NCBI RefSeq assembly: GCF_006345805.1
Contig: NC_043000.1
Location: 146,382,001 to 146,446,000, forward strand
Direction of reading: 5' to 3'
DNA length: 64,000 nucleotides
Source of the DNA: Octopus sinensis
Taxonomy: Eukaryota
Made by a program: the position numbers and the translations under genes. Every line of letters starts with the position of its first letter. The stretch's first letter is position 1. Below, piece by piece: positions 1,766 through 63,335 of this stretch. Below the pieces are notes generated by a model, which searched no databases, was not told the DNA's origin, and saw only the letters and a program-made list of their open reading frames with translations.

Positions 1766-1813
1766 GTTGCTGAAGAGATACTAGCTTTAAAAGTATCACG
1801 AAAGGCCTAGCGG
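1766..1813 (+). ncRNA. Degenerate minimal hammerhead-ribozyme-like motif
   Basis: CTGAAGA (1770-1776), stem II GATAC/GTATC (1777-1781/1793-1797), 2 extra nt, GAAA (1800-1803), palindromic AGGCCT in the helix III position, UA cleavage doublet, then GCGG. Helix I is poorly paired. Confidence 0.4.
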
Positions 1814-2035
1814 GAGGGTCCAAACTTCCGAATTCTTTTACAAAATTTAGAAAAACTGAAGTATAGCTGCAATGGGTGTATGAATCTGATAGGGGAATAG
1901 GTTGAATAAAGTCATAAGTAACTGATCCTCCTGCATTTTCTTTTGTACAAAACCAGGAACTTTTCAGCACCACCTCGTACTTGTTATTTATAATCTAATC
2001 CAACAGCCATATTTTAAAAAGTGCAAACCAAAGAT

Positions 2036-2433
2036 GCGCAGGAGTGCCTGTGTGGTAAGTAGCTTGCTAAACCACATGGTTCCGGGTTCAGTCCCACTGC
2101 GTGGCATCTTGGGCAAGTGTCTGCTGCTATAGCCCCGATCCGACCAATGCCTTGTGAGTGGGTGTGGTAGACGGAAACTGAAAGAAGTCTGTCGTATACA
2201 TGTATATATATAGCTGTGTATATGTGTTTGTGTGTCTGTGTTTGTCCCCCTAGCATTGCTTGACAACCGATGTTGGTGTGTTTACATCCCCGTCACTTAG
2301 CGGTCCGGCAAAAGAGACCGATAGAATAATTACTGGGCTTACAAAGAATAAGTCCCGGGGTCGATTTGCTCGACTAAAGGCGGTGCTTCATCATGGCCGC
2401 AAATGACTGAAACAAGTAAAAGAGTAAAAGAGT
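2036..2433 (+). mobile_element. tRNA-derived SINE family A
   Basis: A-box-like TGTGTGGTAAG, B-box-like GGGTTCAGTCCC, internal (TA)/(TG) tract, 3' (AAAAGAGT)n tail. Near-identical to copies at 50.0, 55.1, 57.1 and 58.4 kb. Confidence 0.9.
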
Positions 2434-2699
2434 ATATCTATAAAAAACTTAATTTTGAATGAATGAGTCGCATATTTAAGAACTGGTTTCCATATCCCAT
2501 ATGAACTGCACTGTTGCATCTTGTCTAATGAGGTATTTTTTTTCACTAGAAAAAAAAATAATATTACTAAATAAATAATAAAATTCTTATGTGGGGAAAA
2601 TTATTCTTTAAACGTATCGTAATACGATGGAAAGGATAAGTGATATTCAATTTCAAAAGGTAACATACGAAAGAAAAATATTTTTTTCTACTCGAAATT

Positions 2700-2882
2700 T
2701 TGGAGGAGGGGGCCAGCTTATTAGATCGTCCGGAGTACGTAACTGGTACTTAATTTATCGACCACAAAAGGATGAAATGCAATGTCGACCCCGGCAGAAT
2801 TTGAATTCAGAACGTAAAAACAGACGAAATACTGCTAAGCATTTTACCCGGTGTGCTAACGTTTCTGCCAGCTCCACGCCTT
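2700..2882 (-). mobile_element. tRNA-derived SINE family B (diverged)
   Basis: Reverse complement of GGCGAGCTGGCAGAAACGTTAGCA...TTCTGAGTTCAAATTC...CATCCTTT...GATAAATTAAGTACCAG, shared with the 20.6 and 36.0 kb copies. Confidence 0.8.
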
Positions 2883-58896: not shown

Positions 58897-59704
58897 TATT
58901 CTTCACTTGTTTTATAGACATGCATTCACATATGTATGTGTATGCGTGATTTTAAGTGTACGCCTGTGTGAGAGTACAAACACATGTATCAACCGATATT
59001 GATGCATTAGCTGAGATGTACGTATAAGTTGTGAAAGGCTGAGTATACGCACGAGTGAAATGAGAATAGGTGCGAGAGTAATGAAATTATATGTACTTGC
59101 AATTAGTGTATAGTTTAGTATACAAAGAAATAATAGATTTTTATGACACGTATTCACTGTTTTTTCCGTTCTTTGCTCCAAATATATGCGCTCTTGTGTG
59201 TGCGTTCGCGTGTGTATGTGTGTGTGTGTTTGTGTGTGTGTGTGTTTGTTTGTTTATGTTTGTGTGTATGTGCATGTCTATCTGTGTCTGTGTCTGTGTG
59301 CGTGAGATTTCCTGTCCTTCATGGCAAATGAGTCAACAGTTGTCAGTTCAAATTTATTTACTCATCGTATAATTAAAAATACCACGCAATCCTAATAATC
59401 ACCCCATAAGCTCCCTGTGACATTGATTATAGCAGACAGGATCTCTTTGCTCACAAGATCTTATTAAATTTTGGTACTCTGCTTTCTATCACTAGTTTTG
59501 TTTATTTGACTTTAACTTCGATGAGCCATTTTCTGTGCCTCTGATTCAGATCTTTTGTCGACATTAAATGTGATATCCCGTATTGTCAAAAGCTTGAGTT
59601 TCCAAGGAGTCCTACACCATAAAGCATCATTCAGCTTTATTTTCCTATCAAGAACCTTAAGAGTATCAAGCCCTTCAATTGTAAACTTTCAGAAATGACC
59701 TTAC

Positions 59705-59979
59705 TTGATTCTTGAGCCACATTACAATATGAATACCGATTTTGAACTGTGTATATCTCTAAATGTTAAACTATGAATGTCCTTCATAATTTCTGTTCTT
59801 TGAATATATCTTCTAGCACAGCATAAGGTAGTGATTTAATAATTAAAAGGCAGCCTATTTGCCTTGGATATTTCCATGTGGTTATTTAATAACTTATCAG
59901 AAAATCCTTCAGCTATATTGTATGGAATAAAACAAAATCTTACCATTGTCAAGAAAAACATTCTGCTCTTTGTAATTTG
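59705..59979 (-). other. Two candidate symmetric microexons (36 nt at 59979-59944; 54 nt at 59758-59705) of an unidentified host gene
   Basis: ttttcactgctttttacgcag|36 nt|gtaaga; 185-nt intron; catttag|54 nt|gtaagg. Joined phase-1 frame is open: NYKEQNVFLDNEIYTVQNRYSYCNVAQES. No recognised homology. Confidence 0.25.
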
Positions 59980-62900
59980 CTGCGTAAAAAGCAGTGAAAA
60001 TGAAAATAAATCAAACACTTCTTCTGGAGATTGTACTGAGGAATGTGTAATTATCTCCAGATCCCAAGAAATTCAAACCAAAAATTAAAAAAACAATATA
60101 TATGTATATATATACATGGATTTTCTTTTATTTCACATGCTTTCTTGGATAATTAAGAAATTTGTTAAATCCTTTGAAAACATTAAATTCACCAAAAAAA
60201 GTATATTTTATTAGTCTTTAAAGAAGACACTAATTGGGTTCAAGAAAAAAATATTCAGCAATGTGTAACGTTATTCATCACAGTTCTGGAAAAGTTCTAA
60301 ATTAGTCTATAAGATTCTAAAGTTGATTTATAGGATGTAAACGTCATTAAAACCAAAATTAAGTCAAAACCAGAGCAAAGGGACGAAAGCTATAAACAAC
60401 AAATCGCTCTAGTGCAACTTGTGGTTGCTATATTTTATTTTAGTTCTTTGTTATAATTTTTATTTATTTATATTCCTGCTTTTTCGTTACATGATTAAAA
60501 GGAAATCAATAGAATCCAAACCAGCGAAAAAGGTGATTAAAAGGTGGAACGTTGCAACAAATCATTACTTTTCTTTTAATCAATTAACCTACGAGTGACA
60601 AGAAAAACATTACGAAAAAGTTATTGAAGAAAACTATATAATTAGGCATATAATATATATAATATATATAATTATATATATATATATATATATACATATA
60701 TATATACGTGTGTATATATATACGTGTGTGTGTGTGTATGTATGTATGTATATGTATATGTATATATATATATATATATATATACATACATATATTTATA
60801 TGTGTACATATACATACATACATGCATATATGTATGTATAAATATATATAAAATATATAATAGAAATATACGTACATCACTTGTATAATATACATTTATG
60901 TAATATAAATGCTACATATACATATGTGTATGTTTATGTATATGTGTATGTGTGTTTGTGAGTGTGTATGTGTTTGTGTGTCTGTGTGTGAGTCCAGGTA
61001 GTTGCGTGCGTGTGCCTACGTATTTATATGAAAACAGTTAAAGGACAGAAATGGTAATATATTTGATTAAGTATCCTATAGTGTTCTTTAATGTCTTCTT
61101 TACGATCTGAGATTAAATCCAACTGCAAAACGTATTAATGCGTACTACCCTCATGAGGGCGAGGAATTATTATATTTACAAAGATGTTACAGGTTTTAGT
61201 TTGCAGTCGCAAAAGAAATTACAAATACACATCTTGTGTGTGTGTCCATATGTCTGTGTCTGGGTTCATGTATATATTCATATACACATGCTCCATCTTT
61301 GAACTTCTCTGCTGTAACATCTGAAAGGTAAGGTCTTCTCTACCCTGATGACGGAGGCTCGTCTTATCCAATGTTAAGGGCATCCATACAGCCGCATATT
61401 GTTGATGAACTAAATCTACCAACATTATTATGGATCGCCGAACAGGTGTTGGGCTTATAACACCTTTCTTCCACCTCTTCAATTTTCTCTGTCGGTTATT
61501 GTCGCAATTTTCTCCGTCGTTCTTAAGTTGGACTTATTAATATAGATATCAATATAATTATACTAAAAATTCATCATCTGAAAGTCCCTACCATTTGCTT
61601 TCTGTCGTTTTGCACGTGTGCCTATATATTTTGTGTCTCATACACAAATTAATATATTTAATATATTTCATGTATCTAATTTGTTTATCCGCATAATTGC
61701 CTCTATATTCATATATTAATAGATGTAAATATCGGCACATGCCTTATATATATCCATCTGTAGTTGGAAATGTAATACTAATGGCTTATTACTATTGGAA
61801 GTATTGCAGGAGCTGCATTTTTGTATAGTGAACACCATGATCCCACAGAATTATAAATAGAGAGCAATCCGAATTGTTTCGGTTTTGAAGCAGTGGCATA
61901 TGATTGATAAATTTCTTGTTCATAGGCGTGTTATTTCGAATGAAGATGAATGATGTATCCACCATTATCTTATTCATAGAAAAAGGGAGCTTGCTTTAAA
62001 TTTGAAGGTAAGAGCCAGTGGGGTGACCATTCCAATGAAATTAAACGTGATTTTTCTGAGAGATTACGCTACTGAGGATGAGTTCCTGAAGAGAATAGAC
62101 AACATTCAATTCAAAATCTGGCGGGAATACTTCAAAATATGGGGTGTGACACCTCACACACCACTCCATAAACCTATAAATCTACAGCGGACGTAATACA
62201 AAAAGAAAACGATAAAGTCAAAAGCTGAACTCTGGAAGGTGTCAGGAAGGCCCGTGCATACACAGCTAACACAAAAACACACATACAAGCGGTCACACTG
62301 GCGTCCACACTGCCAAACATACAAACCACTCGCCCCAAACTTTGGAACTTTCAGGCGCTTTAAAACCCGACGCTAATATACTGCCTAGTGGTGAAAAAAC
62401 AGAGCACATACATTTAGTATGTGTGGTCAATAATATGTACAGTACTAGATCTCTTGCAATTCATATTTGAATTTATCCTTACATATGTATCGTTGTGGCA
62501 TACTAGCAAATGATTTTTACATTATTTGTATATAGTCATAGACTGCCGATTCTGCTCGTCTCCTATTCGTTTCAGGCACGTGATATTGATAATCAACTGA
62601 AATTGCTCAACATTGATATCCACACTTCTTGAATAGAATTTGGTGTGAATTGTCTCCCATGTCAATGACTTTCAGATGTTTTAACACTCGGAGCGTTCCG
62701 AGAGTAATCGCCAACTAATTTTTTTTCCGCAGCCTAACAGCGAACAGAGCTATCTTGTATAATGAATATACGTGGTCAATAATATATATATCTACACTCA
62801 CAACACACACACACATACACATATATGTGTATGTATGTATGTATGTTATATATATATATTATATATATATATATATATATATATAATATATATATATATA

Positions 62901-63010
62901 TATATATATAATATATATATATATGAGCACACACACACACACATACATATATATATATTTTAAAAATATAAACACATGAAAGAATAGAGCTGAACGATAT
63001 ATAATATATT

Positions 63011-63335
63011 TATAATATTAATTCGAGACAAAACCACTATTTTGCAAAACAAACAAGGAAAGACTTAATCAATACATAAAATTTTAATATAATGTAAATA
63101 AACCGCCACTACAATCCTTTCATGTCTTCAAATGACATTCGTCAGGTGGATTTCCGATTTTCAAATCAGTTTCAATTTATGAAGTCTTTCCTTGTTTGTT
63201 TTGCAATAATATATTATTTTGCAAAATAGTGGTTTTGTCTCGAATTAATATTATATAATATTTTACTATAAAATTGGATTTAATCCTAAATCTTATTTTT
63301 CCCTGTAAATTTGGATTTATTCCCTAATATTTGTT
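63011..63335. mobile_element. Foldback element next to (TA)n with a hammerhead-like motif in the loop
   Basis: Arms 63011-63049/63217-63255 (39 bp) and 63043-63066/63182-63205 (24 bp). Confidence 0.8.
63106..63149 (-). ncRNA. Type-I hammerhead-ribozyme-like motif with canonical core
   Basis: CCAC-CUGACGA-AUGUC(AUUUGAA)GACAU-GAAA-GGAUUG-UA^GUGG. Helices I and II are perfect; 15.2-16.2 is a G.G mismatch. Confidence 0.7.

Follow-up and report, generated by a model that had tools for sequence, protein, structure and literature searches.

Hammerhead-like motifs in foldback repeats of an Octopus sinensis locus and their possible origin from Penelope-like elements

Repeats and hammerhead-like motifs at the locus

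The stretch of Octopus sinensis contig NC_043000.1 analyzed here (64 kb, referred to below as the window) is microsatellite-dense eukaryotic DNA with approximately 35% G+C. Listed simple repeats make up 5.3% of it, and there are 49 (TA)n runs of at least six units; positions no more than 10 bp from such a run account for 2.9% of the window, and those no more than 60 bp away for 7.1%. Several foldback repeats in this DNA, and one solo repeat, contain short motifs that resemble the type-I minimal hammerhead ribozyme (min-HHR) found in Penelope-like elements (PLEs). A sequence-only reading of the window had listed nine hammerheads in five families. The coordinates and the five families stand, and blastn of the repeat units against the window reveals no sequence in common among the families; the claim of nine hammerheads is overstated. 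A motif in one arm of an inverted repeat necessarily recurs on the opposite strand of the other arm, so that nine motifs amount to five independent events. The observation is partly confirmed, and the interpretation that linked it to PLEs is partly supported. The best explanation, to which we assign a probability of roughly 0.55, is that these motifs are decayed remnants of PLE-type minimal type-I hammerheads in a microsatellite-rich animal genome.

Four families, called A to D below, lie in inverted repeats, as had been proposed. The arms are 21317-21484 and 21559-21726 in A (168 nt, 98% complementary), 23286-23402 and 23475-23591 in B (117 nt, 91%), and 47063-47143 and 47145-47225 in C (81 nt, 98%), and the outer arms in D are 63016-63052 and 63214-63250; A and C sit in (TA)n. 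Helices I and II of the hammerhead are found in A, B and D, and at every site helix III is 0-2 bp long, so that a monomer cannot form it.

Family B has three copies and is the clearest relic among the families. Two of them make up a foldback (23178-23665) of head-to-head units, 23178-23345 on the minus strand and 23530-23665 on the plus strand, with the motifs pointing outward from the center. Between the units are an (ATT)n tract (23346-23402), a 72-nt center (23403-23474) and an (AAT)n/(AAC)n tract (23475-23529). The left-arm motif (23247-23291, minus strand) reads GACAC C-GAUGA A GGCUG(10-nt loop)CAGCC GAAA CG U U GUGUU, with U4 deleted and ACGU as a palindromic helix III. The right-arm motif (23586-23630, plus strand) consists of CCGAUGA, in which U4 is changed to C, an extra A, GGCUG/CAGCC, GAAA, ACAU and U17, with helix I formed by GACAC/GUGUU; position 16.2 has changed from G to A, and ACAU is non-palindromic. 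This copy passes the full descriptor described below with one mismatch. The solo motif (36573-36618, minus strand) has an intact CUGAUGA and the extra A, while U.C at 10.1/11.1 breaks the closing pair, and AAGU stands in place of ACGU, the change of 15.2 from C to A breaking the 15.2-16.2 pair.

The B unit is about 160-190 nt long. The solo unit (36497-36650, minus strand), which adjoins a repeat resembling a short interspersed nuclear element (SINE), is 87% identical to the arm units; its homology to them begins about 30 nt upstream of the motif, and its 5' end is shorter than those of the arm copies and unlike them. The full units (23178-23240 and 36497-36560, in the minus sense) end at the 3' side in a hairpin with a 13-bp stem, made of AACAAGAUGAGGA, a loop of about 34 nt, and UCCUCAUCUUGUU, which might be a recognition or initiation structure. 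The right-arm copy stops before this terminal hairpin and is followed by a run of 13 A. Five positions of the motif vary among the three copies. U4, 10.1, 15.2 and 16.2 account for four of these, none of the changes is compensated, and conservation is no lower in the flanks than in the motif itself, a pattern that resembles neutral decay. A scan of metagenomes with the family-B pattern gave no matches.

Family A is a near-perfect palindrome (21317-21726), also with outward motifs. Its center consists of a 40-nt perfect palindrome (21483-21522) and 36 unique nucleotides; (TA)n directly adjoins the left end (0 bp), while the right end is separated from the following (TA)n by 56 nt of unique sequence (21727-21782). 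The left-arm motif (21439-21482, minus strand) reads GACCA CUGAUGC G GUCACA(GGAG)UGUGAC GAAA GAAC U C UGGCC. It has A9 replaced by C, an extra nucleotide (G), the G10.1-C11.1 pair, a 6-bp helix II, and a G-C pair at 15.2-16.2 that encloses a non-palindromic AA. The mirror motif in the right arm (21561-21604, plus strand) has the same change of A9 to C and a weaker helix I, with A.A at 1.1/2.1. That family A is a relic of a PLE min-HHR is plausible.

According to the sequence-only reading, CUGANGA-like and GAAA blocks are retained in every motif. An intact core is not: on scanning both strands strictly, we see it together with helices I and II solely in family D (63106-63149, minus strand; CCAC CUGACGA AUGUC(auuugaa)GACAU GAA AGGAUUGU A GUGG). 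Helix I here has 4 bp and helix II has 5 bp, closed by A10.1-U11.1, while helix III has 1 bp and a 6-nt non-palindromic loop. The foldback (63019-63250) has terminal inverted repeats and a unique center holding this single motif, with (TA)n 85-96 bp away on either side. The 63.1-kb motif is likewise a plausible PLE min-HHR relic. Changes of U4 or A9 in the hammerhead core are known to severely reduce cleavage, and present-day catalysis is unlikely in any of the relics, except possibly at 63.1 kb. The predicted cleavage sites would follow U17 in B, C17 in A and A17 in D.

The two remaining families are less convincing. At 1.77 kb (1770-1809, plus strand), CUGAAGA is followed by GAUACU(9-nt loop)AGUAUC, a 2-nt insertion (AC) between helix II and G12, GAAA, an AGGCCU palindrome and A17. 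The G10.1-C11.1 pair is present here and the extra nucleotide is not; helix I, which the sequence-only reading had already found wanting at this site and present elsewhere, is absent. No Rfam hammerhead is matched here at E<=10, and the site is doubtful as a hammerhead. Family C (47057-47231) is a palindrome with 81-nt arms in (TA)n, containing CCGAUGA...GGAAAA; (TA)n is 3 bp off on the left, and a 60-nt unique stretch (47232-47291) comes before the next (TA)n on the right. The 47.1-kb site was rejected as a hammerhead because it has no helix II; U4 is changed to C, a usable GAAA context is lacking, and the site is in no list of descriptor or model matches. It is a palindrome with a chance CGAUGA...GAAAA only. 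Families A and C have a common geometry, with the left end on (TA)n and a unique stretch on the right, and the two stretches are unrelated in sequence.

One additional site, absent from the sequence-only reading, was seen at 62072-62124 on the plus strand, about 1 kb from the 63.1-kb motif and on the opposite strand (CUGAGGA U GAGUU...AAUUC AAAA U C UGGCG). It has 5-bp helices I and II, an extra U and C17; G12 is changed to A, giving AAAA for GAAA, and this is its single descriptor mismatch. It is probably due to chance.

Hammerhead searches and statistical controls

The invariant core for which we tested comprises C3 U4 G5 A6 N7 G8 A9, G12 A13 A14, the A15.1-U16.1 pair, and H17. A simple strict descriptor (CUGANGA, helix II and GAAA, both strands) has one match, 63145 on the minus strand, against 0.11 expected (p about 0.10). 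For loose blocks, which need just a core with at most one mismatch and a GAAA 8-45 nt away, the window has 148 occurrences, versus 99 in shuffled sequences. The full type-I minimal descriptor requires helix I of at least 4 bp, the core, zero or one extra nucleotide, helix II of at least 4 bp, GAAA, a 15.1-16.1 pair whose partners are 0-6 nt apart, and H17, which is not G. With no mismatches it finds one site (63145, minus strand), compared to 0.00 in dinucleotide shuffles, and with at most one mismatch it finds three (23591, plus; 62072, plus; 63145, minus), compared to 0.17.

Because shuffling removes the natural excess of hairpins, we also scanned the real sequence of the window with 719 decoy cores, obtained by permuting the core letters. 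The decoys give on average 0.001 matches with no mismatches and 0.22 with at most one, and the counts of the true core are reached by 0.1% (1 of 719, for the 63.1-kb motif) and 0.4% of them, respectively. A PLE-specific descriptor matches one site, 21477 on the minus strand, and any score is attained by just 3 of the 719 decoys. The counts by the full descriptor therefore lie above both shuffles and decoy cores, and the motif signal is partly above pure chance. With approximately 150 loose matches per 64 kb and the automatic doubling of motifs by inverted repeats, such full-descriptor and decoy controls are needed, as is a family consensus.

A covariance model, R1, was also constructed; we based it on 60 synthetic sequences that follow the published PLE min-HHR consensus alone, none of them taken from the window, and used it to search both strands (128 kb) with filters off, listing matches at E<=10. 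By E-values that are rough throughout, the top five matches are the B left arm (23247-23291, minus strand; 18.1 bits, E 0.008), the B right arm (23586-23630, plus; 17.1 bits, E 0.017), a partial match without helix II (43820-43857, minus; 12.9 bits, E 0.32), the B solo motif (36573-36618, minus; 12.4 bits, E 0.44) and the A left arm (21439-21482, minus; 11.0 bits, E 1.2). The 63.1-, 1.77- and 47.1-kb sites are not among the matches at this threshold.

Comparison with Penelope-like elements

The min-HHRs of PLEs have a helix I of 4-5 bp, an unpaired nucleotide at A9/10.1, a conserved G10.1-C11.1 pair, a long helix II of 7-8 bp, and essentially no helix III, with a palindromic 15.2-16.2 that lets two copies pair (Cervera and de la Peña 2014, PMC4209133). 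Their families are very heterogeneous inside one genome, the copies are mostly solo or truncated, "dual min-HHRs" are found 100-700 bp apart on opposite strands, and cleavage in vitro is weak even in intact copies (PMC4209133). In the window, we likewise see the type-I order of blocks, a helix I of 4-5 bp, a near-absent helix III, many unrelated families, copies that are mostly solo or truncated, and opposite-strand pairs at 100-700 bp. The extra nucleotide is a G in A and an A in each of the three B copies, and is missing in D and at 1770. G10.1-C11.1 occurs in A, in the B arms and at 1770, and is replaced by U.C in the solo B copy and by A-U in D. A palindrome at 15.x-16.x is seen in the B left arm (ACGU) and at 1770 (AGGCCU), but not in the B right arm, the B solo copy or D. 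Accordingly, the fit is close for B, with its extra nucleotide, G10.1-C11.1 in the arms and the ACGU palindrome, and A fits save for its A9 to C change and the non-palindromic AA; a PLE link is plausible for both families. The differences are that all copies but the one at 63.1 kb are altered at an invariant core position or at the closing pair, that helix II has 5-6 bp here versus the published 7-8, and that no PLE body or pseudo-long terminal repeat (pLTR) lies within the window.

Inserted PLEs show strong truncation at the 5' end, and inverted repeats often arise because a second 5'-truncated copy lies next to the first in inverted orientation (Craig et al. 2021, PMC8557442; Frangieh et al. 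2024, PMC11167929). Their hammerhead is close to the 3' end, they insert into AT-rich or (TA)n targets, and one end may bear an optional tail of 30-40 bp (PMC8557442, PMC11167929); the ribozyme is dispensable for insertion in vitro (PMC11167929). Much of this pattern is found here: A and B are inverted pairs with outward motifs, A and C each have one end 0-3 bp from a (TA)n run and the other 58-59 bp away, 5' truncation and an adjacent inverted copy are seen in AT-rich surroundings, and a unique stretch is present at one end. The variation of 5' ends, the (TA)n context and the outward pairs together favor, though indirectly, fragments of a retroelement over a transposon of fixed structure. The (TA)n bias has been published chiefly for Naiads, which are PLEs without canonical hammerheads (PMC8557442; PMC11167929).

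We infer the following scenario. Transcripts of PLEs, or short PLE-dependent RNAs, containing a min-HHR would have been reverse-transcribed at nicked AT-rich microsatellite DNA, and short 3'-terminal fragments would have been left behind, often as head-to-head pairs that were either inserted as such or duplicated later; these fragments would have gathered mutations since. Target-primed reverse transcription of the PLE kind typically results in strong 5' truncation, an inverted, 5'-truncated neighboring copy, an AT-rich or (TA)n target and an optional tail at one end. In an intact source element, the ribozyme would have cleaved only weakly, either as a dimer held together by the palindromic 15.x-16.x or with the aid of a protein of the element. 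Short, 5'-truncated ends of PLEs explain the units equally as well as non-autonomous mobilized elements do. Of the earlier proposal of non-autonomous elements mobilized by PLEs, the link to PLEs is plausible for B and A, and mobilization as non-autonomous units has no support.

Several observations weigh against a PLE origin. Searches with cmscan against Rfam, which covered the window in full and also five sub-windows of 200-2400 nt around all nine sites, gave no hammerhead family at the gathering score in the whole window, none at E<=10 among the best 150 of 186 matches there, and none at E<=10 in the sub-windows around the nine sites; hence, the Rfam hammerhead models recognize none of the nine sites. 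The matches listed are miRNA noise driven by microsatellites and hairpins only. This negative leaves minimal forms possible, as no known PLE minimal hammerhead was among the sequences run. The R1 scores of 11-18 bits compare with about 46 bits for a perfect match, and some descriptors were tuned once the sites had already been seen. A canonical core is missing from four of the five families, and with at most three copies per family, the window has too few for consensus or covariation. In A, both arms share the A9 to C change, and therefore the source was possibly never a ribozyme; the intact motif of D is without the PLE extras, as it has no extra nucleotide, its 10.1/11.1 pair is A-U, and its helix III is not palindromic. 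At 56-60 nt, the unique stretches at the ends of A and C exceed the tail length of 30-40 reported for PLEs. Both foldbacks are true palindromes about a single center of symmetry, which differs from inserted PLEs and would also fit an origin from a miniature inverted-repeat transposable element (MITE) or by snap-back. In agreement with what had been noted earlier, no reverse transcriptase (RT) or GIY-YIG domain of a PLE was found: open reading frames (ORFs) of at least 110 aa yield only an RT of the long interspersed nuclear element (LINE) type in a six-frame search that was non-exhaustive, and a Pfam search of ten frames beside the sites shows no PLE domain.

Alternative explanations

One competing view is that the foldbacks are ordinary DNA elements, MITE-like or palindromic, with a preference for TA or (TA)n, and that the hammerhead-like strings are coincidences among the roughly 150 loose occurrences. 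The window has many long inverted repeats without any motif (arms of 82-330 nt: 50740-53248, 57091-58890, 37304-38601, 48900-49226 and 63645-63965), and foldbacks are frequent in this genome with or without a hammerhead-like motif. Likewise, A and C are palindromes flanked by TA, and in D the motif occupies the loop between classic terminal inverted repeats, in keeping with the short, non-coding, palindromic makeup of MITEs with inverted termini beside TA; a TA duplication would be indistinguishable from the (TA)n context. The number of loose matches, the p-value of about 0.10 for the simple strict descriptor, the lack of Rfam hammerhead matches and the predominance of non-canonical cores all suit this view as well. 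Against it stand the 0.1-0.4% obtained with decoy cores, which puts the hammerhead-like content above the expectation, and the ranking by R1, which places all three copies of B and one of A in the top five. Moreover, A and B have ACGU, the extra nucleotide and G10.1-C11.1, which are not demanded by any descriptor, and the solo B unit lies outside any foldback. We consider coincidence in MITE-like elements unlikely, although it deserves to be taken seriously.

A much bolder view would make these repeats an active system of non-autonomous, PLE-mobilized ribozyme elements, whose rod-like RNAs have a working ribozyme in each polarity and resemble viroid-like RNAs or retrozymes. The families are unrelated in sequence, the units are small (as in B), RNAs of whole elements would indeed fold as rods, and it has been suggested that non-LTR retrozymes derive from PLEs as non-autonomous elements. 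However, an intact core is found in one family only, the changes at U4, 10.1, 15.2 and 16.2 in B are uncompensated, and even intact PLE min-HHRs of the published kind cleave poorly. Besides, the predicted minimum free energy of read-through RNA is -134 (C), -258 (B) and -301 (A) kcal/mol, compared to -8 to -14 for the local motifs, so the motif would be buried in a duplex. This is why the analogy with viroids is formal only. The two strands of a palindrome encode essentially one RNA, therefore two distinct ribozymes of opposite polarity are not obtained; the arm motifs are mirror copies, reverse complements within one inverted repeat. The viroid-like reading was rejected for this reason and for the sequestration of the motif; from the earlier picture of rods with a ribozyme in each polarity, the rod folding remains and the distinct ribozymes do not. 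We regard an active system of this kind as highly improbable.

Metazoan non-LTR retrozymes consist of direct repeats in tandem, about 150-450 bp in size, and every repeat contains a type-I hammerhead (Cervera and de la Peña 2020, PMC7229834); these hammerheads are canonical and efficient, with loop-loop contacts, and circular RNAs are expressed (PMC7229834; Li et al. 2026, 10.64898/2026.07.22.740005). The units described here are similarly small, AT-rich and non-coding; they, too, contain a hammerhead-like motif of type I, and descent from PLEs is proposed for them as well. In contrast to retrozymes, they are inverted or solo, and their motifs are minimal and mutated. Comparison of every unit with the window by blastn gives just the opposite mirror arm or, at a distance, the solo copy, with no tandem direct copies and no direct repeats of the kind expected of PLE pLTRs; therefore, the defining feature of metazoan retrozymes is missing, as is a second cleavage site from which a monomer could be released. 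In view of this, and of the lack of a canonical type-I motif, the retrozyme reading was rejected.

Yet another possibility concerns family B only. The 72-nt center of its foldback (23403-23474) contains a sequence similar to a tRNA T-arm and B-box, GAGTTCGATTCC. This B-box-like sequence is directly upstream of the right unit and in the same orientation, so the right half could be read as a SINE-like element of the RNA polymerase III (pol III) type, consisting of a tRNA-related head, (AAT)n, a min-HHR and a 3' hairpin; the left arm would then represent a 5'-truncated copy in inverted orientation, and the solo copy lacks the head, as expected of 5' truncation. The Sm-alpha SINE-like elements of Schistosoma have a canonical, active hammerhead and a pol III-type box. 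Family B resembles them in being a short retroposon-like unit with a hammerhead and a possible pol III-type box, the tRNA-like head being unconfirmed here. ARAGORN calls no tRNA in the window, this center included, and Rfam has no tRNA match in it at E<=10; the center has no second copy in the window and could equally be an unrelated insertion in the (ATT)n tract. A pol III-driven SINE in this place seems to us very improbable.

Compared to all of these, remnants of PLE-type hammerheads remain the preferred explanation, and what survives is an already described phenomenon, with at most new sequence families of PLE-type min-HHRs. If genuine, the relics enlarge the very large population of PLE min-HHRs described in invertebrate genomes by a few families, illustrate the decay of catalytic positions after insertion, and are useful in repeat annotation, with no new question opened. 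Something more novel is rather improbable: either A, C and perhaps D would represent a class of short, hairpin-forming elements inserted by PLEs at (TA)n targets, or B would be a hammerhead SINE with a tRNA head. Members of the first class could be non-coding, with a tail of about 58 nt at one end, and carry or have formerly carried a min-HHR; the second could be a case of a tRNA-headed min-HHR SINE outside flatworms. Either class, if true, would consist of non-autonomous elements that depend on PLEs and are distinct both from tandem retrozymes and from PLEs that are simply truncated.

Other elements in the window

The LINE-type RT is encoded by an ORF of 685 aa (11741-13798, minus strand) with RVT_1 and zf-RVT domains, whose nearest relatives, in corals, shrimps, insects and fish, are 56% identical at best; a degraded second copy is found at about 34-35 kb (34020-35252, minus strand). 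The SINE-like repeat has six copies in the window, including those at 11046-11560, 20668-20794 and 36126-36546. Four metagenome contigs of the Joint Genome Institute, which have a higher G+C content, share just its core (TTGCCTTTCATCCTTTCGGNGTCGAT..., about 30-46 nt), and this recurrence suggests a SINE core domain that may be common to different taxa; the four contigs come from other taxa and contain no copy of any hammerhead-like family. Among the motif-free foldbacks, the one at 48900-49226 adjoins (TA)n, as A and C do. Finally, a tandem array with a 50-bp period occupies 15716-16315, and its inner copies are 92-98% identical to each other.

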